Below, piece by piece: positions 5,403 through 31,167 of a DNA stretch of 51,051 nt. Positions within the stretch are counted from its first letter, which is position 1; each line of letters begins with the position of its first letter. The translations under genes were made by a program, and so were the position numbers. Source of the stretch: Amoeboaphelidium protococcarum X5 (taxonomy: Eukaryota; Fungi; Aphelidiomycota); assembly GCA_023515725.1 (NCBI GenBank), contig JALDTO010000182.1, positions 1 through 51,051 of the forward strand, in the 5' to 3' direction. A model generated the notes under the pieces. It was not told the DNA's origin. It saw only the letters and a list, made by a program, of their open reading frames with translations, and made no database searches.

Positions 5403-8400
5403 TCAAATTCTATTCTGACTGCGATAAACATTCTAAGCTGATTTGCACTCGGTGATAAGCCACTTGCATGTCCTCTCATCAGGCAAGTGCAAGACCAAAT
5501 CCTCCTAAGTCTCTCTTCGCTTTATCTGCACGTCAGTTCCACCAGCTGCAGATTAGATATCAATAGAGTCACTCAGCATCATCTGCCACTGCACGGTAAA
5601 TCTTCCACCAGGCTGAAGACCAAGTAGACGGAAGTTGCTAATCATGACTATGATATTATCTTTACGAACATCCAAATGAGCCAAGTACACTTCATTTTCA
5701 AACTTCTAAAACCTCGCAGAGTGGAATAAAAAAGCACCGTACGCCTTTCTTCCATCATACACTTCCAGCACGCCGGAGATACCAACATATCGAGGGTACC
5801 TAACACGCTCCAATTCGTGATTCTTCACATTGGCAGAGTTCCTGATACCTTCTGTGAGATTTCCGGTAAAGTCAAACAGGCCGACAGCTGGTTTGGCAAC
5901 AAGTCCCACAATGCCTTTCCCAAATCCTTTAACAAATCCACCAGCACCTTCCTTCTCGGCACCACGAATTGGTTACTCTACAATACCAGTCACTCCGGAC
6001 AAGATGCTCTTTGCAAAAGACTGAGCACCAGCAGTCGCACCTTTAATCGCATGCCTTGGACGATTACGGACTCGCGATGCTTTTCTCTGCGCCTAAAACT
6101 CGGAATCCATCGTAGCCGTGGCCAATCCTTTACTAACACTACTTGACATTTTGGCAAAGGTGTCGCTGAATCCATACACAGTCTTTCTGATAAACGATGA
6201 CGCACCTTTCGCTATTCCGATACCAAAATCTTGAGGTCGATCACTGACAAATCCCAAGTACGGCTCATAGAACACGTCTTTCACACCAGAGCCGATCGAG
6301 TTGAACAATCCAACAGGGTTGCCTAAAAAGTCGGCGGATCCAATCAGTTTGTAAAATTATCCCAGAACCTCCTGAGTATAATGCTTACGAAGCAGTTCCA
6401 TCAATTAAGCCATCGTAAATGTAGGATGCTCCAGAATAAGAGCGTTCAGCTTCAGTCCAGCATCAGATACATTGCCGACAGTCATTGTGAATATATTCAG
6501 CAGAAATAGAATAGGATTATGAGAATGAGCAAGTTCAACATCCAAAGAGCTTCCTTGAGATCTCTCAAAAGTGATATTGGCCTTGATCGGCTAAACTTCC
6601 ATCACCTCAAAATACATTTTCTGACCAACTTCCTGATACTGTGGCTCGCCATAAAACTAGATTGGATCATAGATGTAACTGGCAGCATTCAGATCCACGG
6701 CATCAAACTTGAACACATCGACTATGGACATAATAAAAGCCTCATTCAATTCCAGAGATATTTCTTGGAGTAGTAAAGAAAAGTATTTGAAATAATCCAA
6801 TCCATAATTCTTGTTCTTGGCTCTAACCACCGCAGCTTAAAGAACAGGAAGAGCAGACTGTTTACTATCCTCTTGGCCAATCATGGTAGGATACAAAATA
6901 ATAGGAAAATCCGCATCATAGTCTTAATTGTCAGCTTATATCCAACTAATGGAAAATCCTAGACTCTCATGCACAGATTGATCCTTATAGACAAGACTCA
7001 AATCTTTCATGGACAAATACACTCGCTCTTTCTACTGCTTATCCAGCAGCGATATTCCAAGGCCAGGTAGAGCGAGTTCAATAATCATGCGAATCGGAGC
7101 AGAGACATCAACCTCTTCAAACTGCTAATCCTTCTAAGAACCGTCAGAAATCATCTTGTAGATTGAACCAGGCTGCTTCCAGTCAGACAACTTAATAACC
7201 GTTGTTCTACCTTCAAATACAATATCCACACCCAGGACACCAAATCCATGAGCAGAAGGATACTTTATAGGGATCTGGGTACCAATTTCATCAATCACCA
7301 ACTCCTTCTCATAACTGTTGACATTGATCAGCAGCAATCGGTCTGCCATCGCCGGCTCATCCCAGGTGTACAACATACTCTATTTGTGAGGAATACGATA
7401 CTTTGGTCGCGTCTTATGCTGATACACAATGACATCTGCTGAGGAATTGTTGTCAAAGCGATATGGCCACGACTCCTTCTCCTTCTGCACGGCAATGAAA
7501 ATAGTTGCATTTTCCAAGATAAGGTTGACAGAGAGCAGAATCTCGTGCTTAGTGTTATGATTCAAAACTTTGATAAAGTTCTTACCCATGACATTACAAT
7601 ACACATACGGACTCCATAGATCATAGCTCTCCGGCAATCTAAAGCATATCATTTTGTCCACATCTTGAGGAAATTCATACACTGGGCATTTATCATTCGA
7701 GTTCACCATAATCGAGCCTTTACTATTCAAAACTTTGCACTCCAGCATCTCATCCATCAAATTTCTAACTATAAACCTTGGCGCAAAAGATATAACTTTG
7801 CTAATCTAGTATTTACCTGTACCAGTCGACACTTTCATACCGAGCGGAATAACGGAACCAATTTTCCGTAAGTGCACCTCATTCACTGCACCCACAGTCT
7901 CCAAACTAAATGGCTTTGACCAGCTAGAATCAATAGTTTTCACCTCAACACGACCGCGGAGGTGTTCACCGGACGCAAAGTTAAACATCAATGGCTAAAT
8001 ACTATCAACATTCTACAATCCGACATTATCTTACGACACACACGGACTAACTTTGCGCTACATCAGTAGAGAGTTGGCCTTGTAATCTAGATACAACCCA
8101 GTGGAATTCAGAATGATGTAAGGAGAGTAGATGGTGATTTTCTTCGAGCCAACATCACGTCTATTAAGTTGATTATAGTGCAATTTAAGATTCAATGCTT
8201 GACCAAGCGAATCTCTAACAGTAATATGGTGCTCTTCAAACTTCTCCTCAGGATTGTTAATGATTGCAATCTCAGACTCATTGTATCCGACACCGGGAAT
8301 CAACAGTCTCAATCCAACAGTGTGCAAAGATGTGATATTATGAATTCTGGCACTCTCGCCTTTATCAATAGATCCATTATACTGCTGCTTAGAACCGCGA

Positions 8401-11400
8401 TCATACAGACTGTACTTGAGGGAATATGGCAGCAGATTCTCAAGCTCGTAAGGAGCCTCGATGGTGTACTCCATTAAACAAACATTCGCATTTTGCCGAG
8501 ATTAAGCATAAGTCTTAGCAGATACCACCATGAAAAAGTCAGGCAAGTCGTCGTTTTAAGCACCTTTGCAAACAATGTTCACTGCAGAGGACTACTATTT
8601 ACCACGAGCAGTCTTTCGCCAGTCTAGACTAACATCGCTCCAACCATAACTGAATTCATTGCTCGGTCGGACTCTAATCTACGAGTCATGTATCGATGGA
8701 ATAGGCACGGCACATCTAGACCCAGCAGATAATTTCATTACGCGCTCACTATCACTACCACCATCCACAGCAGTCATCATCAACTCCAAATCAATATTAG
8801 TGCTGTTCAAGATGGTGAGCCCAGATCTAAAAGTGACATGTTTAACATTACCTTGGAGCGTCACTTCACACACGAGTTGGTAAGATACACCCTTCACCAT
8901 CGGTTACAGAGGATAAAGTTGAACGGCAGCCTGATCAATCGAGATATTCTTTAACGTCTCCCAGCCAAGACCATTGATTTAAATATTCAAATCGTGATTC
9001 TTAGCAGACAACTCTTTACGCATTTGACGCCAGTTCTCGAATCTATATGGTACCTCGCACTAATCAGAAATATTGATTAATTGAGCGTCAGATGCAACAG
9101 CCGACCAGACTACAATCTCAAAACCAGTCTCATTGCGCAAGATATAAGGATCATCAGCTTGTCGTTAAACTTCATCACCTTCAACTTTTTACTTGTCCCA
9201 CATCGACTGAACAAATAGACACTGCTACATCAGCTGATTTGACACATTGATATCCAGCCGCTTATCAGTTTTAAATACGATATCGCTGCAATCCTTCTAC
9301 AACTTCACGAGACCATTGATGAGTACAGGCTCGATCACAGGCTCCCAATGAGAATTCTTGATGTTAAAGAAATTAAAGAACAGCGGAGTCTTCACTTTAG
9401 CTTCCAAATTGGCGGACCAGTTCTGCAGTTCACCAAGAACTTCATTCATCTGCAAATCAAACATTGGCAGGTGGAGATTACTTAAATCATCAATGAGGAT
9501 GACACGGAAGCCTTTGAGGTAAAACTTAAATCGCTCATTCGGATCATTTTAAGTAGTCTGCACCGGCTAAATCTAGCTCAGAAAGGATTCAGCCCTCTAG
9601 CTCATTTAACTGGAAACTTCCTTGCCCTTTAGCACAGTATCACTATTAGATTATACGACTTGATTATATTTCTCCATCACACTACTAATAATAGAGGAGA
9701 ACACAAACAGATCATGATAGGAGACACGAAGAACTATTATTCTAGGGATATCCAACGCCCACGCAGATTAAGCTTTGCCTTTCGACGGACGATTATCCAT
9801 TACAAATGTGGCTTCACTTTCATCAAGAACAACCACAGCGGTCCCATCTTGGTCTTTCATGTTACAGAGTGATAGTGAAATTCCTTATAAAACGACGGAC
9901 ATAATACTCTCTTAAGTTACCAGCAGTTCATCAACATGCAACAGAATAGCATTCGTGTCTGCTTGCTGAGAGTCTTTTAACAAGGTAATCTAAGTGTTCT
10001 TGGCATCCACACGATACGATAAAGTTGCAGTTGACACCACCTTTTCAGACACCACAAGGGGAGACTCTTGCTGACTACCATCGCTAACAACTTCATTATG
10101 TGGCTTCATGACCAGCGACTTTTACAAACCTCCCATCAAGTACTAATACAATTCAAAAACAAATCCAATTTTGACATTCACCTGGATGCGATTAGCATCA
10201 ATGATTAACAGCGCGTCTTACTTGGGATTAGTTGAATACTCCAACTTCAGCTATTACTCATCAGTTATAGCAGGCAACATGATATCTCTATAGTATAGAC
10301 TCTTCTTACGACCATCCTGAATATAAAAATGCTACACATCTACGAGAACAGACATAGTTTAGTTGGATCTAGTAACAACATTAACTCCGATATTGTTAAC
10401 TTGGAAGGTGGCTAAAGCATCGGAATTTTCAAACTTGAGCTATAGCGACAATTGCGGAACCTTAAATACTCCCTTAAATTATTCAAAAGGATGTCGCAAA
10501 TCAATATCCGACACTTTACGCTCCACAAAAGTCTTCTAAGCCGAGCTCTAAGATCCTGCACCACCAAGCAAAGGAGAGCTCATCAGCATCTGATACATAT
10601 CCAAGAAGAATAAATACTGCTTTTCAGTCAAATGGATAGCCAACGCAGTGGACTGTAGATCTAATGTGAAAGCAGGTAAGTCATGCTTTTCATCATTGAG
10701 AGGCAGTCGAAATTTGAGATCAACGTTCAGATCGTCAAGCACAGATAGTTCTTACCGTTTACCACCAACCTTTAACTAATCTGCAGTCTTCAGCGATATC
10801 TTACTCAAATTAAGGACATAATCGTTACAGTATACATTAGAGTCAACTACAGACAACTTGGAATTTAGACTCATATTACCAAGATACGCTATAACAACAT
10901 CCGGCTTGGACAATTACTTAGGTAGCAACACGACAGGTGTATCCAAATGTACATCAAGCACCAACTTTAGTATCTATGACGGATCAATAATCGACTGCGG
11001 CTACATAACATTGCGAGCCACCAATGCCATATCTTAACCAAATCTAGTCATAAAACCCAAAAACTGCATAAAGAAATCCTCCAAGTATGTAATCTGAAGA
11101 GAACCACCATTAACAGTAACGCGCTGATCATAGCCAGGATAGTTTTCATTCTAAGGTGAGAACGTCTCATATTAAACTTCAAGCAGCCTCTTCTGCGATA
11201 AAGTGCGAATAAACTCAAAGTACACTTGATTCTCAGTTCTCTGTACCAGATCGCGGGCAACAATCTTTCCGACATCAACATCAACTCTGATAGTGCCATC
11301 AGAGGGAAGTTACACAATGACTCCAACATTTTCAACAGCACTAAATGCGAACTTTTAATCTTTTTACCGAAGAGTCAAAGACAACTACTTCATTGTAAAC

Positions 11401-14400
11401 TCAAACTGCATATCCATGGCTCGGTCTTCCGCTTAAGGCATATCACCAGATTTTACGACAGACTAATCATCCTTAGTTTAACTCTGAGGCTACTAAGCTG
11501 GCGACTCCTAAGGGGTGATGAAAGTTGACAGTACATACTGATAGATTCTCATTAAGGACGTATCATTAGCTTCCAACGCAACAGCATTAAAATCCACAAT
11601 TAAATGTATGTCTTTACCTCTAAAATCCTTGTAAAACTATGGATGCTTCTTGTTGACAACCTAGAGCTTCAAATTGGCCAAATTCTATTACTAAAAGTCC
11701 ACGCCATTTTGCTATCCCAGATCTTAGTATTGGCTATCGATAAGCTTATGATAAACGTCTTCTGAGCCGTCCGCGCGCGAGACCAGCACGATACCGGCAA
11801 CTGATAACATGGCAGACAAGTCATAAGGCCGCACAAGCATACTAAAGTCGGCAGCTTTGAGACACAAATCAGCCATCTTTTAAAACAATTTAGTACCAGA
11901 GTCATATTCAAATACATTCAACTATAGACTATGGATGCGGCAATCAATCTTCACCAATTTACTCTGAGCCACAGTGGCCAAGTGTACAGTATGTCTCTCA
12001 GAATCCGCAACGGATTGCAAATCAAGAGAGGCAATATCGTCCGAATCCGTCAGATTTCCATCAGCATGCAATAACGCCCTCTCTGTAAAAGCTTGTCCAG
12101 CATCAAGTATACCAGTCTGCTATGTCTGAATCTCTTGTATACGACTATGGTCAGACATGGCGTCATTGTCACCAATCTTCTCTTACTAATTAAAATCATC
12201 TGCTACCCCAGACAAAAGTGCCATAATAAGCCACCAGTACTATTAAGTAAAGTTCACTTCCAAAGACGGCAAATCACCCGACACTTTAACCTTGTTCAGA
12301 TTCAGAGCCTTGGGAAGAATAGAAAGATCCACATTCAAGGAGATGTTGCTCTTCGGCAAAATTGGCTAAAATCCTAACTCAGTAAGCTCAATGGCCATAT
12401 TCGACAAATGCACTACAAACCTATCGTACATATACCGCTCCAGCTCTTCCTCAGACAACTCAGATATGCGCGCAATCAAATCTTCTTTCTTCTGCTTACT
12501 GACAATATCAGTCTCCACACAAATCTGGCCCATATCAAAGACAAAGTCAACAGACTCTGGCAATTCCAAAATTTTATCATAGAACTGAAGAAACTTCTAA
12601 TTGACGGATTCTTTGCTAATACATCTAAACCATTATTTGAGAGGCATTTTAATGAGTGGCGCACTGAGATCCACATTGAGATTGACACTCTAGTGACCAT
12701 ACATTGCTATAGAGAGAGCTCCTTTGCCCATAACATCCAGTTGAGCATTCAAACTGTCGCGCACACCCATTCCAATCACATTCTCGCTGTCTTTGGGAGC
12801 ATCAAAGAAATGAACCAGTTGAGGTAAAAACTTTGGAATATAAGTAATCTCAAGAGGCAATAAAGACATTTGAACATCCAGATCTGCGGCGACAACTTTA
12901 GATGGTGGAATAGTTTAAACAGCTATAGTAAAGAGACTACCATTAGAAGATTCTCGTTCAGATGCTTTAATGATACTCTATACTTTCTACTCAACAATCT
13001 CTGTTGACGCTTCAATTTTACTCAAATCCAACTTGAAATTCATTGAACGAGGATAAAGCTCTACATGCGCATCAATAGAGTACAACTAGGCATCAATCAA
13101 CTTTGGCATCTGGATTTAGTCCTTATCTCTGAAAACATTCATGAGAGTTACATCACCTTTAGAGATTTTAAATTACAGCTTCAGTCGCAAATCATCATCG
13201 CTATTCTCATACAAACTATCCTGCTCTTCATTGTAATCAATGATATCGTACAGCTTCTACCTATGCTCTTCTGACAATTCCTCATTGCTCTAACTACCAG
13301 ATCCACTCGACCATATCCAAGATAACCATCCACCGGATTTCTACTTTGAACCACCTTTGCCACTTGCTTCGTCGATCAGCTGTAGCGGATCGACAAGCTC
13401 CTTACCAAACTTTTTCAACTCATTTTTGCCATACTTTATCGCTAATCTTCTAAAGAACCTAATGTCTTCCACGGTCAAACCTGACATTTTATCAATAGCA
13501 TCCAGTTGACTCAGCACCTAATCATATTCCTTCTTCAAGCGACGATAACGAGAGCTTTCACCTCCAGCAGCAGGAGAAGTTGTATCGGCACCAGAGCTCT
13601 AGGAGGCATCTTCTGGAGATACCAATTCAACAAAACCAAGCTTCTTTTAATACAAGACTACATATTTCTATCGCAAGTCGCGGCGATTCTTCATGTAATT
13701 CCAACTGCTTTTGTATGCAATACTCTTGACATCAGATAACACACATTCAATAGCATAAGTCCAGCGTCTAGCAGCCGCCGATCTAATACTATTATCCAAC
13801 AGAATATGATGTTAATCAAAATATAAGCGCTTCTTAACTAGCATATTGAAATTATCAACAATAAAATACACACTCTCATGTTGATGTTCATCCAGAGATA
13901 GCGATATACTTTCCACTACTGACTCAACATGATAGCGAGGATCAGTTAGATCTCTCTTCTTCTTCTTGTTTATGACCAGCTTGCTAGACATACTGACAGG
14001 ATTGAGAATATACTAATGTTAACCAGACTGCCTAGAATTATCAAGAGTATCAAAATACACCGCTAAATTTTGCAACAGCACTTTCTTATACACCGCGTCA
14101 GCAGAATTGGAGATAAACTGCTCTTCAAACTAAGCATTAGTCGATTTAGCAGAAACTTCATCAATAGCAACCACGGCAGTACTTACCCCATCTGTAAACT
14201 ATAAATGAATACGCTAAACAGAAACCTGCAGATTATCAATAATTTTGGAGACAAGACTGTCGAAAAATGAGGAGCCTTTCGACTGATCCTACTCATTCTA
14301 CCCTCCAGTACCAGCAGCACTCAACATATTCTTGTACGCCTGATCCAAATTAGCCAAATCAACCAATTTCCTCTGCAATATCGCCTCCTTCACAGCGTCA

Positions 14401-14699
14401 ATATCTTTCTGAGCCACGGTTCCAGTCGGCTGGCAGACCAGACGGACATCGCTAATAGAGACAATGACCGGCTTATGCTTCAGATTATTCCATGGAATAG
14501 AGAGCTTAATTTCACCAACCACTCCATCCACTAACTCCAAGGGAATCTAAAATTAATGAAACACGTCACTACGAATCTTACAATCCTTCAGAGTGACATT
14601 TCCATTCCAGATTTGCAGCGATAACTACTGAGACTGCAAATTGCTAATGTACTAACCAAGCGTTCTATTCAAAATATCTACTACCAACTGCTCAAACAT
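5403..14699 (-). CDS. VPS13: VPS13 bridge-like lipid transfer protein, ~3098 aa, apparently intronless
   Basis: Chorein N-terminus MFEQLVVDILNRTLG[TAG]YISNL...IWNGNVTL...GEIKLSIPWNNL. C-terminal motifs WI[TAA]ADN[TAA], GSADFLGNPVGLF and KPAVGLFD. All VPS13-like track fragments share one frame. Ends TGA 5403-5405. Confidence 0.96.
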
Positions 14700-15456
14700 A
14701 CCAAATTGATCCAATTACAATCAGTTACTTGTGAATTATAATCTTTAAAAGCGCAATGTTTATTTAGATGATGAACAGAAAGGCATGCAGTGAGCGCAGA
14801 TGATAGATGATGCGATGATCGTCTGCAGGCAAAGATGATGGATGGATGACTCGACCAAGGGCTGATTTTTCAAACTTGAATGAATCAACGCGCGAGGAGA
14901 AGCTTTTCACGTTTCAGGTACGTTTCAGAGAACTCGTTCAATGTGAATTCCAATACAATATACGTACTTACCTGAGCTAAATTGAATTGAATTGCATTTC
15001 TACTCAATTACACGGTGTGCACAATAATTTTTATTCTTATGAAACTTTCTTTTAATTCTTTAGAAGGATCAAATCTTTTCAAAGACTGGTAGAGCCACAT
15101 ACGCGTAATTTAGATTCGAATCAAAATAAGCCAGACAGATAACTGTTGAGAAACAAGAGGAAAGATCTAAACGCAGTAGATTTGAGACACATTTACCTAC
15201 ACGGTGCCGCAAAATAGTAATAATAATGATAATAAGCCTTTCAAACAGCACCACTTCTCTCCCGTTACTATAAACATCGAACCGCTAAACTGATCAAGGA
15301 GACTCTAGTTTGAGCAGATGACAATGTGCCCCTGATTAATCCAACTCCAAATCAGAGCATACATACAGAGCGGCCGTAATTTCCTCTTTATATCAATTTT
15401 AAATCATTTTATTTGACTTGTTATTATAGTGTGTAAAAACTATAAAAATACAAAAT

Positions 15457-23045: not shown

Positions 23046-26000
23046 TCATCCGACCCATTTTCTCACGTTTCTAAACATTCTCAGCCAAGGCCCGTCCGCG
23101 TAATCATCAGACTTATGCAACATCTCGTCTGGACACCAAGAGCTGCTTACAGTCCTTATGACACGCTCAGGATGAGGCATCATGATCAGAACGCGTCCAT
23201 CAGCAGAGCAGAATCCAGTCACGCCATCTACACTACCATTCGGGTTCTGTGGATACTTTTCTGTTGCTGAATCGTGACCATCCACATATCTTAGAGCTAC
23301 CATTTATTAAGACTGCAGCTGATTGTAATCCCCACTAGACTCAAATTCGGCCAATCCTTCGCCGTGCGCAACAGCAATCGGCAACTATGAACCAACCATA
23401 TCATCAAACCAAATCTGACTAGCTGCTGACTGCACAATCTCTACCATGCATGTTCTAGCCTCAAACTGCTCACTCTAATTCTTGACAAAACGAGGTAACA
23501 GCTAATTCTTAGTAGATGCAGTAGCACCAGACGTATCAGTACTCGAGAATAAAGACTTTAACTGAGACAGCATCTGACAACCATTACAAACACCAAGGGC
23601 GAACGTATCGCTTCTCTAAAAGAATTTCTTAAACTGATCCACTAACTGTTGGTGATACAAAATACAGTTGGCCCACCCGGAGCCGGCGCCCAACACATCA
23701 CCATAACTGAATCCACCACAAGCTGCAAGACCGACAAAATCATCCAATGTAACTTTCTCCTCAATCAAATCAGTCATATGCACGTCAATGGCGCTAAAAC
23801 CAGCTCTCATAAAAGCATACGCCATCTCGCGATGTCCATTGACACCTTACTCTCTCAAAATAGCAACCTTTGGTCTGGTGCTGAGATTTAACGTATCCAA
23901 AGGATTAACCAGATGATTAAATGTCAACTTGTAAAACAATCCCAGATCTTAAAATGAAATTCCATCATATTCTTACTTAGCACAGACAGGATTGTCCCTA
24001 AGAGCCTGCATTCGGTATGATGTCTCACTCCATAGCTTCAAGCAATCTTGAAGGTCAAACTTGACGAGATCGCCATCATTTACAGAGTCACTTAATTAAA
24101 TAGAAAGCTCCATGGAGTCACAAAGAACTTATCCTATGCAATGCACATTAGAACTCAACTGGCACTATTCAACCAGCTCCAAGAACTTGGACTATTCTTT
24201 AGCATCAACTTAAACTACGGCGCCCAGTTCTTCATTTACCAAGAATGACAACAAATCGTCTTAAGAGATATCCAATTTTAAAGCAACTCCAACTCTGCCA
24301 GCAAAACACATTTCCATCAAAGTAACGATAAGTCCTCCATCAGATCGATCATGATAAGCCTTGATCAAATTGCTGTTTCTCGATAAAGTCATAAGATGGA
24401 AAAAGTTCTTCAGCAAAGATACATCTTCAATGTCAGGGACCTCTGTTCCCACTAAGCCTAAAGTTTGAGCATAGCAAGATCCACCTAATCTCATTTTGCC
24501 ACCAGCCAAATCTACGAAATACAACAGAGACTGATTCATCCTGTGCAATTAGGGAGTCAAAGTCTTTCGGACATCAACCACAGGAGCATAAGCCGTAATT
24601 ACCAAAGATAGTGGGGAAGTGACAGATTTGGTACCCGCTTGATCATCAGAATCGCGCCATGATGTCTTCATTGACATAGAGTCTTTACCAACTGGAATGG
24701 ATATTCCCAACTGCGGACACAGCTCCATGCCAATCGCGTGCACAGCTTCATATAATGCTAATCCTTGGCCAGGTTCACTTGCGGCAGCCATCCAGTTGGC
24801 AGACAATCTGACACTACCAAGACAACTCTAAGTATCGATAGCCTTGCTTGAATTCTCACTGTTAGAGGATGTATAATCTTCACGATATCCAATGTATGCC
24901 GCAGCGAGATTAGTCAAACTTTCACATACGGCCATTCTAGCTGACGCAGCTGGATTAATCAAAGCTAAAGTAGGACGCTCACCCATAGACATACACTCTC
25001 CCGTCAGAGTCTCATAAGATGTGGCAGTAACAGCACAATCGGCCACGGGACACTGCCACGGTCCAACCATTTGCTCTCTACATACCAGACCGGTCACCGA
25101 TCTATCTCCAATAGTGATGAGAAACTACTTAGAAGCCACAGCTGGTACCTTTAAAACGTTCTTAACAGAACCTATTAAATCAACTTTACCAAAATCGGCA
25201 GGTATAGGCTGCAAATCCCTGCGTACAGTACTATCAGACTTCTTCAAAGTGGGAGCTTTGCCAAAAAGTAATTACATTGGTAGATCAATAGGCACTTGAG
25301 AAGAGAGACAATCCACAAGTCTGAGTTTCTACTCTTCTGTGGCAACACCAGCAATCCCGAATGGGCAGCGTTCACGTTGACATATAGATTTAAACACTTC
25401 AATTTGATCGCGATCAATGGCACATACGAACCTCTCCTGCGACTCATTGCACCAGATTTGCATAGGAGACATTGACTGATCATTGCATGGAATTTCTCTC
25501 AGCTGGAAAGTGGCTCCCATTCCACTATCATGTACTAGCTCAGGGAACGCATTACTTAAACCGCCAGCACCAACATCATGCAGCGACAATATAGGATTAA
25601 GATCACCCATTGCCACACAGGCATCAACCACTTCTTGAGCGCGTCTCTGCATCTCTGGATTGTCCCGTTGAACGCTGGCAAAATCCAATTCCGCCGAGCC
25701 AGATCCACCAGATGCACTTGAAGCAGAACCGCCTCCCAATCCAATGAGCATACATGAACCACCAAAAACAGCTAGATAGGATCCAGCAGGTATTTTATTC
25801 TTCTCAATATTCCGTGGCATAACATTACCCATACCACCAGCGATCATAATTGGTTTATGGTAACCAAACACCTCTGACCTATCAATCTGCTGACAAAATG
25901 TCCGGAAATATCCAGTTAAACAAGGTCTGCCAAACTCATTATTAAAAGCAGCAGCGCCCAAAGGGCCTTGTAACATAATGTCCAGAGCACTGGCAATCTT

Positions 26001-27134
26001 CTTGGGTTTACCCACGCCATCACGCTCCCAGTCATGAACAAAACCAGGAATTACCAAATTAGATACTGTGAACCCACAGAGACCAGCCTTGGTTCTGCTA
26101 CCACAACCAACCGCGGCTTCATCCCTAATCTCACCACCGCTGCCAGTAGACGCACCCTGATAAGGACTTATCGCTGTAGGATGATTATGTGTTTCTACTT
26201 TGCACAACAAATGGACATCTTACTCATCCAACTGATACTCTTTGTCGGCTGATTGAATCTGCAAATACTGAGCGGAATGTCCTTTCAACACAGCGGCATT
26301 ATCCTTATACGCACTAAGCACATTCTATGGATGCAATTTATAAGTATTCTTGATCATTTAAAAAAGAGAAAGATCCTATACCACACCATCTATAGTCCAA
26401 GAACCATTAAAAATCTTGTGTCTACAGTGCTCAGAATTAACTTGGCCAAACATCATCAACTCTGCATCAGTTGGATTCCTGTTAATCTCGCGATAACTCT
26501 TGACCAAGTACGTAATCTCTTCCTAACTAAGAGCAAGGCCCCACTTTACATTAGCTGCCTAAAGAACACTTTACGCTTCATGCTCTGATTAGCATCCCAA
26601 TATATCGACAGATGACAACTCACCAGGTACCGCAGAAAGTTGGAAAATGTCTTCAATTCGAGGCTGATCATTCTCAAGGACACACTCAGTCATTCTATCA
26701 TGAATTTCTTCCATGACTTAATCCCATTATATCTTTGATACAGGTGACTTGCAAGATATAATGTATACTCTGCCTCGTTCCACGCGTTCTATCACATCTC
26801 CCAATCCACAGTACTTGACAATGTCCGTCGCTTTGGATGACCATGGTGATATCGTCCCAGTTCTCGGAATCACATGAATTATTTTACCATTGTTTTAATT
26901 CTTCCAGCCATCCAATAACTAGGGAACTTCTTATGCTACTTGAGAGCGCCCAGTCAAAAATGTGGTAATCTTGACGCGATCTCCATCGTTAAGCTGGCTT
27001 TAACTCAATTGACAATAGCACACATAGTAAGCTTTGATATCCTCTATTTGACCGGATGCGACATGATTAACCTTCTATAGCAGTTGCAAATTTTTGGCAG
27101 GAGACTGTACTCTATCACCAATTATTCTCAGCAT
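23046..27134 (-). CDS. ADE6: Phosphoribosylformylglycinamidine synthase (large-type PurL), ~1362 aa
   Basis: [49 protein letters not shown][TAA][29 protein letters not shown]. Single frame ending in TGA. Confidence 0.98.
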
Positions 27135-27415
27135 ATTATCTCCGTTGATATTACCGTTCCCACTTGCAGTCATTACAGTTCAACGATATTTTAAAATACA
27201 ATCTGCTGATGTCGTTTATCAATCGTCGTTAAAAAGAGCCGATCGCGTGGCGCAATTTTTGGCTTTGATCCAACCTGGCCATCCAGCCATAACCGAGACT
27301 GTACGTAAGTTTGCACAATGTACACGCCAAAAGGTAATGTATAAGAATATGCTTGAATTTTTAAAACCGCTTTCCAAGTCAAATTAACAATCTAAAACTT
27401 AAATCTTTATATTCA

Positions 27416-27865
27416 TCAATTATGCCTGAAGAATTTCATGCCCATCCAGTTCATGACTATTGCTGCCAGTGTTACAGGGATCGTGATTGGCACCAAGTAG
27501 CAGTAGTAATGGTCATCCTTTATGGCGTCCAGCAATTTATTTCCAGTGTACGGCATGAATTTACTGATAACAATTGCGTACATACTAATGGCAAAGTAGA
27601 CATAAGTCGCCAGTAGTAGCAAAATCCCATATGTCCATGTGAGACCACTATCCACAGTGCTGTTGTGTTTCACATGCTTGTTCGACTCGACAATCGTGCG
27701 CCGGAACGATGAATCGCCTTGAAACAGACGAGCCTTCACGTTCGGGTGGAAGTCTGTGATTGAACGCTGCTCCGGAGAGGTACTACTTGCGAGAGACTGG
27801 CTATCTTCCAGAAATTTGGCTTACTTTATTTAAAGAGAAGTACTTTCGATCAATCGATTGGACAT
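27416..27865 (-). CDS. PIG-Y-family membrane protein (putative GPI-GlcNAc transferase subunit), 149 aa
   Basis: Two TM segments with SKFMPYTGNKLLDAIKDDHYYCYLVPITIPV...NWMGMKFFRHN, the pattern of fungal/plant PIG-Y-domain proteins. ATG 27865 is reached by reading TAA as Gln. Confidence 0.8.
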
Positions 27866-28034
27866 TCTTTTAATAGAGTAGTAGATAATTGGGCCAAGTT
27901 TGAATTGAGAAGTTTAATTATTTTATGTCAAAAAGGCAAAGAGAAAACAAAGGATATGAGCTCAAGTTGACAAGTTTCATCAAGTTCACGCCTCTGCCTA
28001 AAATCCGTTCAATTTCAACACCCAGAAGAAGGTA

Positions 28035-29168
28035 TCATTTCTGTAAAGGATTACTGGTGAAGAATAACATCTTCTCTCTAAAGTTCAGAACATCGCCAGC
28101 ATCAACGGCGGAGTTTTACTTCTGCTTCATATTGAAACGAATCGTTTGACTCTTGTTAGCATTCTCAATCATCAACTAGATCCACAGCTGCTTCTTACCA
28201 GCCTAACGCTAATCATACGGCATCGCCAGAGCCTTGGCAATTTCAGCCTTTGCTCTCTGAGCTATTTCTTTTAGACGCGCAATCTCATCCTGCTCAATTT
28301 ACAGCTGCTTCTGCAACGACAACAGCTCAAACTCTCTCTCAATCCTCGTCTACTATTTCATATTTTGGGATGAGGTATTAGCTTGAGAAGACGGCGTCTA
28401 CTTTTGCTTCTTAATACGTATAGTGCCAGCGATCACTTCTGTAGCTGAGGCCATTGCTTTCTCGAGAGCCGCGTCATCCTATTTAGAATGCTCAAAGTTT
28501 TACTTCATCTCAGTAAGGTGCTCCTCAAGCCCGGCTCTAACTCTCGCTTGCTCTTCCAAGTCTTGCTTCAATTAATCAATCTTTTCTAGAATTTACTTTT
28601 ATCTCGTCAGTTGGTCCGATTAATCCAACTCCAAATCCTAAATAACTTATTTAATGGCATCGACTGCCTGGGAAGACTGTTCAATATCATTCTAGAGTTG
28701 TAAGACTTCATCAGTAGGATCACTACTTGCACTATTCTTCTCCTTCATCATCTGCTGTTTAAACTTGGCAAGTTCATCCTTCTTCAATCTCAAAGTCTTT
28801 TGCTTAGACTGAATTACGCTGGTAGCAGATTCGATGTGTTATTAAACTTGTTTCAACTACTCTTTAGGCTTGTTGTCACGAGGATCATCAAGCAAGTTTC
28901 GCTTATTCAAGTGGTCAATAAAGTATCGACCAACAGCTTCATCGTACGTAATCTCCCATCCATAAGGTACTTCGTCTCCCTTACACTCCTGCCAGGTCTT
29001 TGGCTTCCAGAGTGCATCTCTCGGATCGACCCAAGATGTCTCCTTAGTCACATCATTAATAAAATAAGCTTTCTAATTATGAGCTGAACTCACAGCTTTA
29101 CGCCACCCGGCAGGCAGAGGATAATCATCGCTCTTGGTCTTTTATTGCTCCATCTACTTTTCAGGCAT
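28035..29168 (-). CDS. Compact KIBRA/WWC-like protein (tandem WW + coiled coils + FREKMxFFT tail), 377 aa
   Basis: PLPAGWRKA...TSWVDPRDALWKPKTWQECKGDEVPYGWEITYDEAVGRYFIDH...DDPR, followed by coiled coil, TRIEREFEL...DEIARLKEI and C-terminal NFREKMLFFT. These match KIBRA signatures as recalled. Confidence 0.85.
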
Positions 29169-29334: not shown

Positions 29335-30783
29335 TCAGTTCTATTTCTTTTTCAACTGCAGGCATTTTTGAATATGTTTCCACCATACAGTCAGATCATT
29401 TGGGTCCTTGTTGTTGTAGTAGCTCTCAACCAGCACCCAATTGTGGCAACATGGACACATGCCTTCTTTACGACCATCTTTTGTTGAAAGTCGCGTCTCT
29501 TCAGGCTTTGGCATTTGTGATTTAGATGACGAGCTCACTCCATGAGTCCAGTGCATGTGCTACCAATATGAACTAACTTTGATCTTGTGCCAATGTGGCT
29601 ACTCGCACAAAAGACAGAGCCCTTCACGCAACGCTCCATGGTCCCTGACAAATCTAGGAGAGTATAAATCACTAGCATCCCTGGCCTCCTACAACGCAAT
29701 TCCTGGAATTCCAACCACCTCCTTATGGAGAATGTCAAGAGGCAATTTTCTCTCCACAGGGAGATTATACAAGATCTTGTCAAACTGTTCTTTGGTTACA
29801 ATATCCACAGACACTCTGGCGGTGTTTCTTGAGCGGGTGTGCGCGTATTTAGACACAACTCTACTATCCTGTAGCTCTTAACAAGACTCAAATGGGAAGG
29901 CTTGACTGAGTGACGGCAGTTATAAATCATCCTAAAATTGACTTTTGATAGGAGATGGCAACGACGCGGCAAACACCAAAGATTGCATGGAATCAGAGAA
30001 GCCCAATCGCTTTGATCTCAAATCGGATAGCATAAGATTTTCAGCTCCATTATAGGAAGCCTGAGCTTAATCAGCAGAAAACGACTATCTCACTCTGAAC
30101 GGAGTTTATTGTGGTTGTTGTTGCGGATACGGAAGAATCAAATCATGCTTGGACGATGCCCGCTTTCTTCTCCTTCGCTACGGCCCGCCCGTGGTAATTG
30201 GTTCAACTTCGTTAAGCTACGTGGTAGAAGTTGAAAACTGTAGAAGCATTGACGCCGCATAAGAGTCTTTTGACGAAGCTGCCGATAGAGGAGCATCTCT
30301 CTCACTCAGGCGTCTGGGTAAATTGCTTTGATTCTCGACCACCATGTAAACTTCATCTCCAAGACCATCTCCGCCAGCATCACCAACAACACTATTCCCA
30401 CTATAGCTCATGGCATTACCATCATACGGGACCGCCTAGTATTATGTTTCATACTTGGGTCCTTTCCCTGGAGACGGCAATGATCTGGTCTGAAACAGAG
30501 GCGCTTTCTTTCGCAGAGGCTCAAACGGCTACTGATTAACCGGCGGCATGATCGAGTTACTCTGAATCTTATTCTAAATTGCCTCAATAGTCTACTCCCT
30601 GGGGGACTTTCCAATAGCATTGTAAATCTACACTCCTGTCGCAGTCTGATGTCCAGTAATCTTCTAATTGCTATTCGGATTAGTGGCATATTCTGAGCCT
30701 TGTTGAGACAGACGACGATGTCCATCATTAGTGTTGTTATACCGACCACCTGCACTCTGATACAAATCTTCTTGTCTTTACAT
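29335..30783 (-). CDS. Rua1_C/DUF4451-domain putative transcription regulator, ~482 aa
   Basis: Long low-complexity N-terminus. C-terminal domain LYTPRFVR...REGLCLLC...SSYW[TAG]HMHWTHGVS...EGMCPCC...WWKHIQKC. Single frame from ATG 30783 to TGA 29335. Confidence 0.8.
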
Positions 30784-31167
30784 CTTTGATACAAATAATA
30801 AAATAGCTGTACTCGTTAGAGAGTATATGCCTCTGATATGCGATAGAATTCAAACAAACTGGGGCATAAAAGAAATGATCAATTTATTTATAGCCATCAT
30901 GTCGTCAGTGTTGCCACTGCGTTGTCTGATGATCAGTGTGTTGGCAACTAAAGTGCGACCTGCAGTTTGATCTCTGCCTCTTGCAAAGCTGGTTTCACTT
31001 TCGCGCGCTTGTTGAGTTGCCGGTCTTTCAAGTTTGTCGCCGTCGATCGTTCGCTGTTCCACTCATGCTGTTTCCCCTCGTTCCTGCTGCTAGACTCTTG
31101 AGTACCTCACCTTTCCATCGTAGATAACTTAAGACTTATTCGCTCCAGAAGCGACTGACGGAAAGAA

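Follow-up and report, generated by a model that had tools for sequence, protein, structure and literature searches.

The window analysed here, the whole stretch of 51,051 nucleotides of contig JALDTO010000182.1 from Amoeboaphelidium protococcarum X5, carries at 28035..29168 on the minus strand one intact frame of 377 codons, which is very probably the Amoeboaphelidium orthologue of animal WWC/KIBRA in a minimal architecture of WW1, linker, atypical WW2, first coil, disordered linker and C-terminal module. The organism parasitizes algae and belongs to the sister group of fungi; in animals, KIBRA is a scaffold of growth control and memory. The gene is readable only if TAA and TAG (TAR) encode glutamine and TGA is the stop: 23 of the 377 sense codons are in-frame TAA or TAG, read as Gln under code table 6, and once they are read in this way all elements quoted in the initial annotation are present, that is the WW tandem, the DPRDALWKPKTWQECKGDEVPYGWE linker, the coiled coil, TRIEREFEL...DEIARLKEI and NFREKMLFFT. 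The same code applies to the whole window, where TGA-bounded frames of up to 3105 codons hold dozens of TAA/TAG (117 in the longest), and the UAR=Gln code of Amoeboaphelidium protococcarum is on record (PMC5304391).

A GenBank twin of the product, encoded on a 2.8-Mb contig of another A. protococcarum assembly (MP228_009780, P0154, 'hypothetical protein', 377 aa), differs from it at 12 residues (97% identical) and stood proxy for it in the folding, Pfam and ESM Atlas searches. The sole non-conservative change among the 12 lies at codon 351 (28116-28118), TAA (Gln) in the window and Tyr in the twin, a single-base TAA/TAY difference. An AlphaFold2 model, built from the twin and a 17-sequence family alignment (mean predicted local distance difference test score, pLDDT, 74; predicted template modelling score 0.63), places long helices after two WW domains and has pLDDT ~90 over residues 11-130, the WW domains included. 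The features of the gene are as follows.

28035..29168, minus strand: complete coding sequence in a single exon, 377 codons plus TGA stop (start ATG 29168-29166, stop TGA 28037-28035); GenBank twin of equal length
29019..29120, minus strand: WW1, residues 17-50 (Pfam WW; residue table; AlphaFold2 strands 22-27, 33-38 and 43-45, pLDDT ~90)
28974..29018, minus strand: short inter-WW linker of the KIBRA type, residues 51-65, ALWKPKTWQECKGD... (phmmer alignment to KIBRA 6j68 and to MAGI2; family-wide conservation)
28878..28973, minus strand: atypical WW2, residues 66-97, second Trp replaced by Leu93 (best Foldseek matches are KIBRA WW12 complexes)
28431..28871, minus strand: coiled-coil region 1, residues 100-246 (AlphaFold2 helices 100-142, 152-181, 186-228 and 232-246)
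28353..28424, minus strand: Ser/Gln-rich linker of low confidence, residues 249-272 (pLDDT <50 at 249-270)
28224..28349, minus strand: C-terminal coiled-coil helix, residues 274-315, TRIEREFELL...DEIARLKEIAQ (AlphaFold2 helix 275-315)
28101..28187, minus strand: basic helix, residues 328-356 (AlphaFold2), with the conserved Trp329 (family P-x-W) ahead of it
28056..28082, minus strand: terminal motif FREKMLFFT, residues 363-371; the protein ends six residues on (SNPLQK)

Only 16 residues precede WW1, the side on which YAP/Yorkie carries its TEAD-binding domain; WW1 has both Trp residues and a longer loop 1 (SSAHNQK). Conservation across the family peaks in WW2 and the linker, where P68, G70, W71, Y82, I84, H86 and P96 are invariant; the position of the second Trp in WW2 is occupied by L, I, V or F in all 27 tabulated members, while Y82 and H86 are conserved. 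When the longest stop-free piece (71 aa, from the last part of WW1 through the linker and WW2) was compared with the PDB sequences by phmmer, KIBRA WW12 was the best match (E 3.3e-18) and MAGI2 the second (E 2.9e-17), with the tandems of NEDD4 type, YAP and SAV1 far weaker (YAP WW, E 3e-7). The KIBRA linker given in the initial annotation reads as quoted in mouse KIBRA WW12 (PDB 6j68). Among 1.84 billion representative proteins, the best whole-tandem matches are short homologues of fungal type (350-520 aa, 60-70% identity), followed by animal WWC proteins such as the Acanthaster 'protein kibra', which are 1050-1320 aa long and have the tandem at residues ~24-89; a few multi-WW proteins score among them. 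The structural comparison agrees, as the best Foldseek matches in the PDB are the KIBRA WW12 complexes with LATS1, beta-dystroglycan, AMOT, Dendrin and PTPN14 (E 1e-8; template modelling score 0.60-0.78; for 6jjw 0.78 at a root-mean-square deviation of 3.0), then MAGI2, and in the ESM Atlas both shape and features put the protein nearest to the WWC1/WWC2 cluster. In the reciprocal direction, which had been proposed as a check, Acanthaster Kibra picks the WWC-like gene as its best match in the 23.6-Mb aphelid genome (E 3.9e-28, the next locus at 8.4e-12), the match running over residues 4-133 and thus past the WW domains. That next locus is a second tandem-WW locus (G000:C233:119285-119536 and C207:582781-583059), 35% identical to the WW12 piece.

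The C-terminal half carries the decisive evidence, since KIBRA and MAGI cannot be told apart by their WW tandems alone. In animal WWC, three conserved helices follow the peptide that resembles a substrate of aPKC (PMC13282866). The C-terminal ~110 residues of the short proteins, and no others, were turned into a hidden Markov model, which matches the final ~115-130 residues of animal WWC over its full length, and the comparison of the animal C-terminal profile with that of the short family gives an hhalign probability of 97.2% (E 3.4e-11, 94 columns); for the aphelid protein by itself, a match of no more than the first helix reaches E 1.1e-5. The aphelid module comprises the last ~105 residues, and its elements are colinear with those of the animals: TRIEREFELL, a heptad helix with D-E-I-x-R-L-K-E-I, P-x-W, the basic helix and FREKM.FFT. 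The C-terminal coil is the counterpart of the animal helix ending in ...LRELK (conserved in animals as ...L[KR]E[IL]K), and the basic helix that of the 'positive-faced' helix KK[TA]SKE.YKLR. The C-terminal KIBRA strings given in the initial annotation were borne out: a regular-expression search finds [ST]F[RK]EKMAFFT close to the C-terminal end in 14 animal WWC representatives, directly before the tail where the protein ends in PADDV, and the coil motif is conserved there. The Kibra-like proteins of Capsaspora, Salpingoeca and Syssomonas also carry the module. Membership of both ends in WWC/KIBRA, as originally claimed, is thus upheld by the PDB and Foldseek matches, the reciprocal match and the profile comparisons of the coil and the C-terminal module.

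Like the aphelid protein, animal WWC1/KIBRA, WWC2 and WWC3 (Drosophila Kibra) have an N-terminal WW tandem with short linker and atypical WW2, a first coil and the C-terminal module; they are ~1100-1300 residues long, as compared with 377, and in addition possess the PF25802 hairpin, a C2 domain, a Glu-rich stretch, an aPKC pseudosubstrate with no convincing aphelid equivalent, an extra helix of ~25 residues and a PDZ tail. The WWC1-like helical hairpin (PF25802), which scores E 1e-42 to 1e-47 in animal WWC, has no Pfam match at E <= 0.1 in the twin or in a chytrid protein (P0005) and was not aligned in the profile comparison of the coil. Pfam yields WW domains only in the aphelid and chytrid proteins and no C2 domain, and as WW domains, helices and a 24-residue linker fill the 377 residues of the AlphaFold2 model there is no room for a beta C2 domain of ~130 residues. 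The class-III PDZ ligand (ADDV) is absent, the protein ending ...FFTSNPLQK before the TGA where animal proteins end ...PADDV, and the ~25-residue helix which lies between P-x-W and the basic helix in Holozoa is missing from the aphelid protein. Pfam, the alignments and the end of the protein therefore agree with the absence of C2 domain and ADDV tail described at the outset, and with that of the hairpin. The aPKC pseudosubstrate-like peptide of animals reads FxR...S-x-R-[MW]-K and lies upstream of the C-terminal coil (PMC13282866). A weak look-alike of its core, TIRIKK at residues ~249-255 of the aphelid protein, which resembles the animal S-V-R-M-K-R, has no FxR arm, is not conserved in chytrids and is provisionally treated as chance.

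At least six chytrid genera possess short orthologues, 370-520 residues long. Those of Rhizophlyctis rosea (two copies; KAJ3038803) and Borealophlyctis nickersoniae have been auto-named 'Protein wwc2' in GenBank, while those of Caulochytrium protostelioides (RKP00114) and Synchytrium endobioticum (TPX45824) are 'hypothetical'; further full-length short homologues are found in Lobulomyces angularis, in one standard-code organism sister to the aphelid and on several anonymous metagenome or run contigs. The chytrid proteins share with the aphelid one the full architecture, the length class, 31-38% identity, the loss of the WW1 His, the form of loop 1 and the C-terminal module, whereas they use the standard genetic code, and in some of them the N-terminus is extended or the C-terminus carries a short tail. 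The protein KAJ3205946.1 of Clydaea vesicula (P0010) has been auto-named MAGI3; apart from the WW tandem nothing in its alignment is MAGI-like, and at the C-terminus it matches the terminal module of WWC; judged by its sequence the name is probably a misannotation. The chytrid survey suggested in the initial annotation therefore confirms the gene on the fungal side and at the same time removes the notion that it is unique to this genome; this taxonomic survey is partial, the search with the chytrid C-terminal region having returned only close relatives.

On the holozoan side, the unicellular forms comprise Syssomonas (399 aa), Choanoeca flexa (731), Salpingoeca kvevrii (783) and Capsaspora CAOG_07806 (2199, with the WW tandem at residue ~1390), in which Pfam finds neither C2 nor PF25802. 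They have the WW tandem and the C-terminal module in common with the aphelid protein, Syssomonas being equally short, whereas they keep the WW1 His and, except for Syssomonas, contain the extra helix and long insertions. In a maximum-likelihood tree of 36 rows and 278 columns (WW tandem, start of the coil and C-terminal module), the aphelids (99/97) fall within a clade of aphelids and chytrids (97/92), while animals, choanoflagellates and Capsaspora stand together on the other side with weak support (89/67) and Syssomonas forms a long, weakly placed branch. As the fungal-side and holozoan clades mirror the species tree, the origin of WWC is placed no later than the opisthokont ancestor, in line with the initial proposal, and the pattern of the gene tree fits that predicted by vertical descent from this ancestor.

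That the aphelid gene presents the minimal core of the scaffold, as had also been suggested, is plausible given the short Syssomonas form within Holozoa, although which way the change went is unproven. Judging from the sequences compared, short forms on both sides favour a short ancestor. A somewhat better than balanced case can be made for an ancestral WWC of ~400 residues (WW-WW, coil, C-terminal module), present no later than the opisthokont ancestor and kept by aphelids, chytrids and Syssomonas; the animal line would later have acquired the hairpin, C2 domain, aPKC site and PDZ tail by insertion. In this same scenario, the invariant module of basic helix and FREKM.FFT would mark an ancient partner, older than animal Hippo and overlooked in animal work, and the view of KIBRA as a holozoan innovation would have come from searches requiring WW plus C2.

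The literature treats Kibra/WWC as a holozoan gene of 'animal multicellularity'. Reviews and surveys place the origin of Kibra in Holozoa (PMC7035326, PMC10402117, PMC13366479), and one systematic survey called Kibra only by WW plus C2 (PMC7035326). A full-text literature search, with Sebe-Pedros et al. 2012 outside its coverage, returned no paper joining Kibra with chytrids, aphelids or other Holomycota; the only prior trace of a fungal-side Kibra found is the automatic naming in GenBank, and the chytrid orthologues are described in no paper found. The gene is a real, conserved member of a known family with reduced architecture, and its news value is evolutionary, not mechanistic. A C2-less orthologue in aphelids and chytrids moves the origin of an upstream Hippo/polarity scaffold back to the animal-fungal ancestor, and the aphelid core defines ~250 residues, including the C-terminal motif, kept for roughly a billion years. 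Short WWC forms also offer small, tractable versions for structural and binding studies, and the finding flags GenBank entries misnamed as 'MAGI3' or 'hypothetical protein'.

Coiled-coil region 1 supports the homology, matching animal WWC residues ~90-265, between WW2 and the WWC1 hairpin, with an hhalign probability of 95.9% (E 5.5e-9; animal A3 profile against short-family A1 profile), though composition may inflate this value, as it can in coiled coils. Several observations weigh against reading the gene as a minimal KIBRA. In the six-frame translation of the aphelid genome, a single animal C-terminal module sequence gave no match and an animal-only C-terminal profile gave only a chance-level match elsewhere (E 6.4); these misses are likely due to in-frame TAR codons that split the frame and are read as a limit of sensitivity, the profile-profile result being clear. 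In WW1, the canonical His between beta2 and beta3 is replaced by Asp39, and it is lost in all ten aphelid and chytrid sequences (D/Q/S/A/R/K there), so that, as far as the sequence tells, PPxY binding at the aphelid WW1 may be altered. A genome scan for closely spaced PPxY pairs showed no enrichment (10 as compared with 15 in the control). Finally, a search with a pattern of the type GTPDYIAPE found two kinases of NDR/LATS type without PPxY or LPxY, in TGA-bounded frames without intron models.

The loss of the WW1 pocket His in the aphelid/chytrid clade means that a KIBRA-like PPxY or Hippo function is not established. It is about evenly poised whether the protein is a true WWC homologue that was repurposed on the fungal side, with a role outside any Hippo-like cascade (polarity, trafficking or cytokinesis in zoospores and amoeboid stages are examples) and a different ligand that is not PPxY or is phospho-dependent. 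The canonical His is kept in all holozoan and in most anonymous sequences (exception P0084), whereas the aphelid and chytrid proteins combine its replacement with a longer, basic loop 1 of conserved S-x-x-H-x-K-K type, which favours such a repurposing, as do the two NDR-family kinases without PPxY, the SARAH match in a short frame without a kinase (see below) and the literature, which puts Yorkie only in Holozoa/Filozoa. On the other hand, WW2 and the linker hardly vary, the tandem folds like that of KIBRA, the genome has TEA-domain, SARAH and FERM genes, and the absence of PPxY has been judged on two candidate kinases without intron models.

Among the translated PPxY-pair loci, all are Pro-rich proteins without evident Hippo link, and no candidate ligand came out of the scan. 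Two neighbouring genes per homeologue (G000:C192:162451-166241 and C235:523318-527622) encode Pro-rich proteins in which back-to-back PPSY motifs (PPSYSPPSY, PPSYRPPSY) precede a poly-Pro stretch; these proteins could be WW ligands or belong to the wall.

The initial annotation had recommended a search for partners of a Hippo-type pathway. The aphelid genome has TEA-domain genes, SARAH-domain matches and many FERM genes, and the two NDR/LATS-type kinases located in it lack PPxY. A search of the genome for LATS based on Pkinase_C retrieved ordinary AGC kinases only. The FERM genes inspected are of MyTH4-FERM and talin-like type, besides one FERM protein of 516 codons. The sole SARAH matches (G000:C98:1791753-1791875 and C264:1588654-1588776; L031 1177-1644) are located in a frame of ~150 codons between TGA stops; neither this frame nor the sequence just upstream of it contains a kinase or WW domain in frame. 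It may encode a protein with SARAH as its sole domain, or belong to a gene whose introns were not modelled. A TEA/ATTS gene is located about 5 kb from a large gene of MyTH4-FERM type with two FERM_M matches (G000:C207:339649-347107, homeologous to C98:935243-942674), and both homeologous contigs preserve this order. A Hippo-type role is possible, though unsupported here, and the more specific proposal that the aphelid WWC feeds a pathway of the NDR/LATS-Mob-TEAD type is tentative and rather doubtful.

With respect to mechanism, the orthologue could work as a cytoplasmic adaptor that would bind a proline-rich partner through its compact WW tandem. In animal KIBRA, condensates form with the help of the central and C-terminal coils (review PMC13339755), and by likeness to these condensates the two coiled-coil segments of the aphelid protein might drive self-association or clustering. 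Prediction of a homodimer (2 x 377 residues) gave no answer (score 0.00), which counts neither way. The C-terminal basic helix together with FREKMLFFT may provide a docking surface for an anciently conserved partner; in animals this region lies beside the aPKC-binding site.

It is, by comparison, very unlikely that the gene encodes an unrelated tandem-WW coiled-coil protein, MAGI-like or lineage-specific, which resembles KIBRA by convergence or shared WW ancestry. The MAGI2 tandem nearly equals that of KIBRA in the PDB search (2.9e-17 vs 3.3e-18), MAGI1-3 share with the aphelid protein the compact WW1-linker-WW2 unit and a replaced second Trp in WW2, one chytrid orthologue is auto-named MAGI3, and coiled coils align easily. 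MAGI1-3 however contain guanylate-kinase and PDZ domains, of which Pfam finds none in the aphelid protein, and lack the WWC coils and C-terminal module, whereas in the aphelid protein this module, independent of the WW domains, aligns with animal WWC (94 columns, 97.2%), a near-identical FREKM.FFT occupies the same terminal position together with the conserved P-x-W, and the best match is reciprocal.

That the gene is a contaminant, or was recently transferred horizontally from an animal or another holozoan, is hardly credible, as nothing specific speaks for it other than the single copy in an assembly where many genes are paired, while the 23 in-frame TAR=Gln codons fit the code of the host, TAR/CAR swaps occur among strains, the gene is also present on the 2.8-Mb contig of the second A. 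protococcarum assembly and it groups with chytrids, not animals. The fungal-side origin assumed at the beginning is accordingly sustained by genetic code, GenBank twin and tree placement. Contamination is further ruled out by the neighbours in the window, which are housekeeping genes in the same code, including a TPR protein and the following genes, with the Rua1-type regulator directly upstream of the WWC-like gene.

5406-14720, minus strand: VPS13, 3105-codon frame with 117 TAR codons
21317-22969, minus strand: bystin
23049-27179, minus strand: FGAM synthase
27419-27820, minus strand: PIG-Y
29338-30849, minus strand: Rua1_C-type transcription regulator

No synteny was found between the window and the contig of the closest standard-code homologue (L046, neighbour Ssu72).

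The WWC-like gene is under purifying selection. Contigs of related strains or samples span it at about 93-95% identity without a single insertion or deletion within the coding sequence, while such changes begin directly outside it, at 28015/28016 and from 29196. Strain differences were counted in a sample, the best-supported 40 of 158, of which the 33 listed within the coding sequence fall on third (22) and first (11) codon positions and never on the second; read with code 6, they comprise 29 synonymous and 4 non-synonymous changes, including six TAR/CAR interchanges and two TAA/TAG. The excess of synonymous changes and the TAR/CAR swaps thereby provide independent confirmation both of the TAR=Gln reading and of purifying selection.

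Most WW, FERM, TEA and SARAH loci of the genome are near-identical pairs on different contigs (C214/C264, C286/C264, C233/C214 etc.), a pattern suggestive of hybridization or duplication of the genome. The WWC-like gene, unlike many of these homeologously paired genes, was found as a single copy in the assembly, and contigs of another sample contain two alleles of it, each at about half depth.

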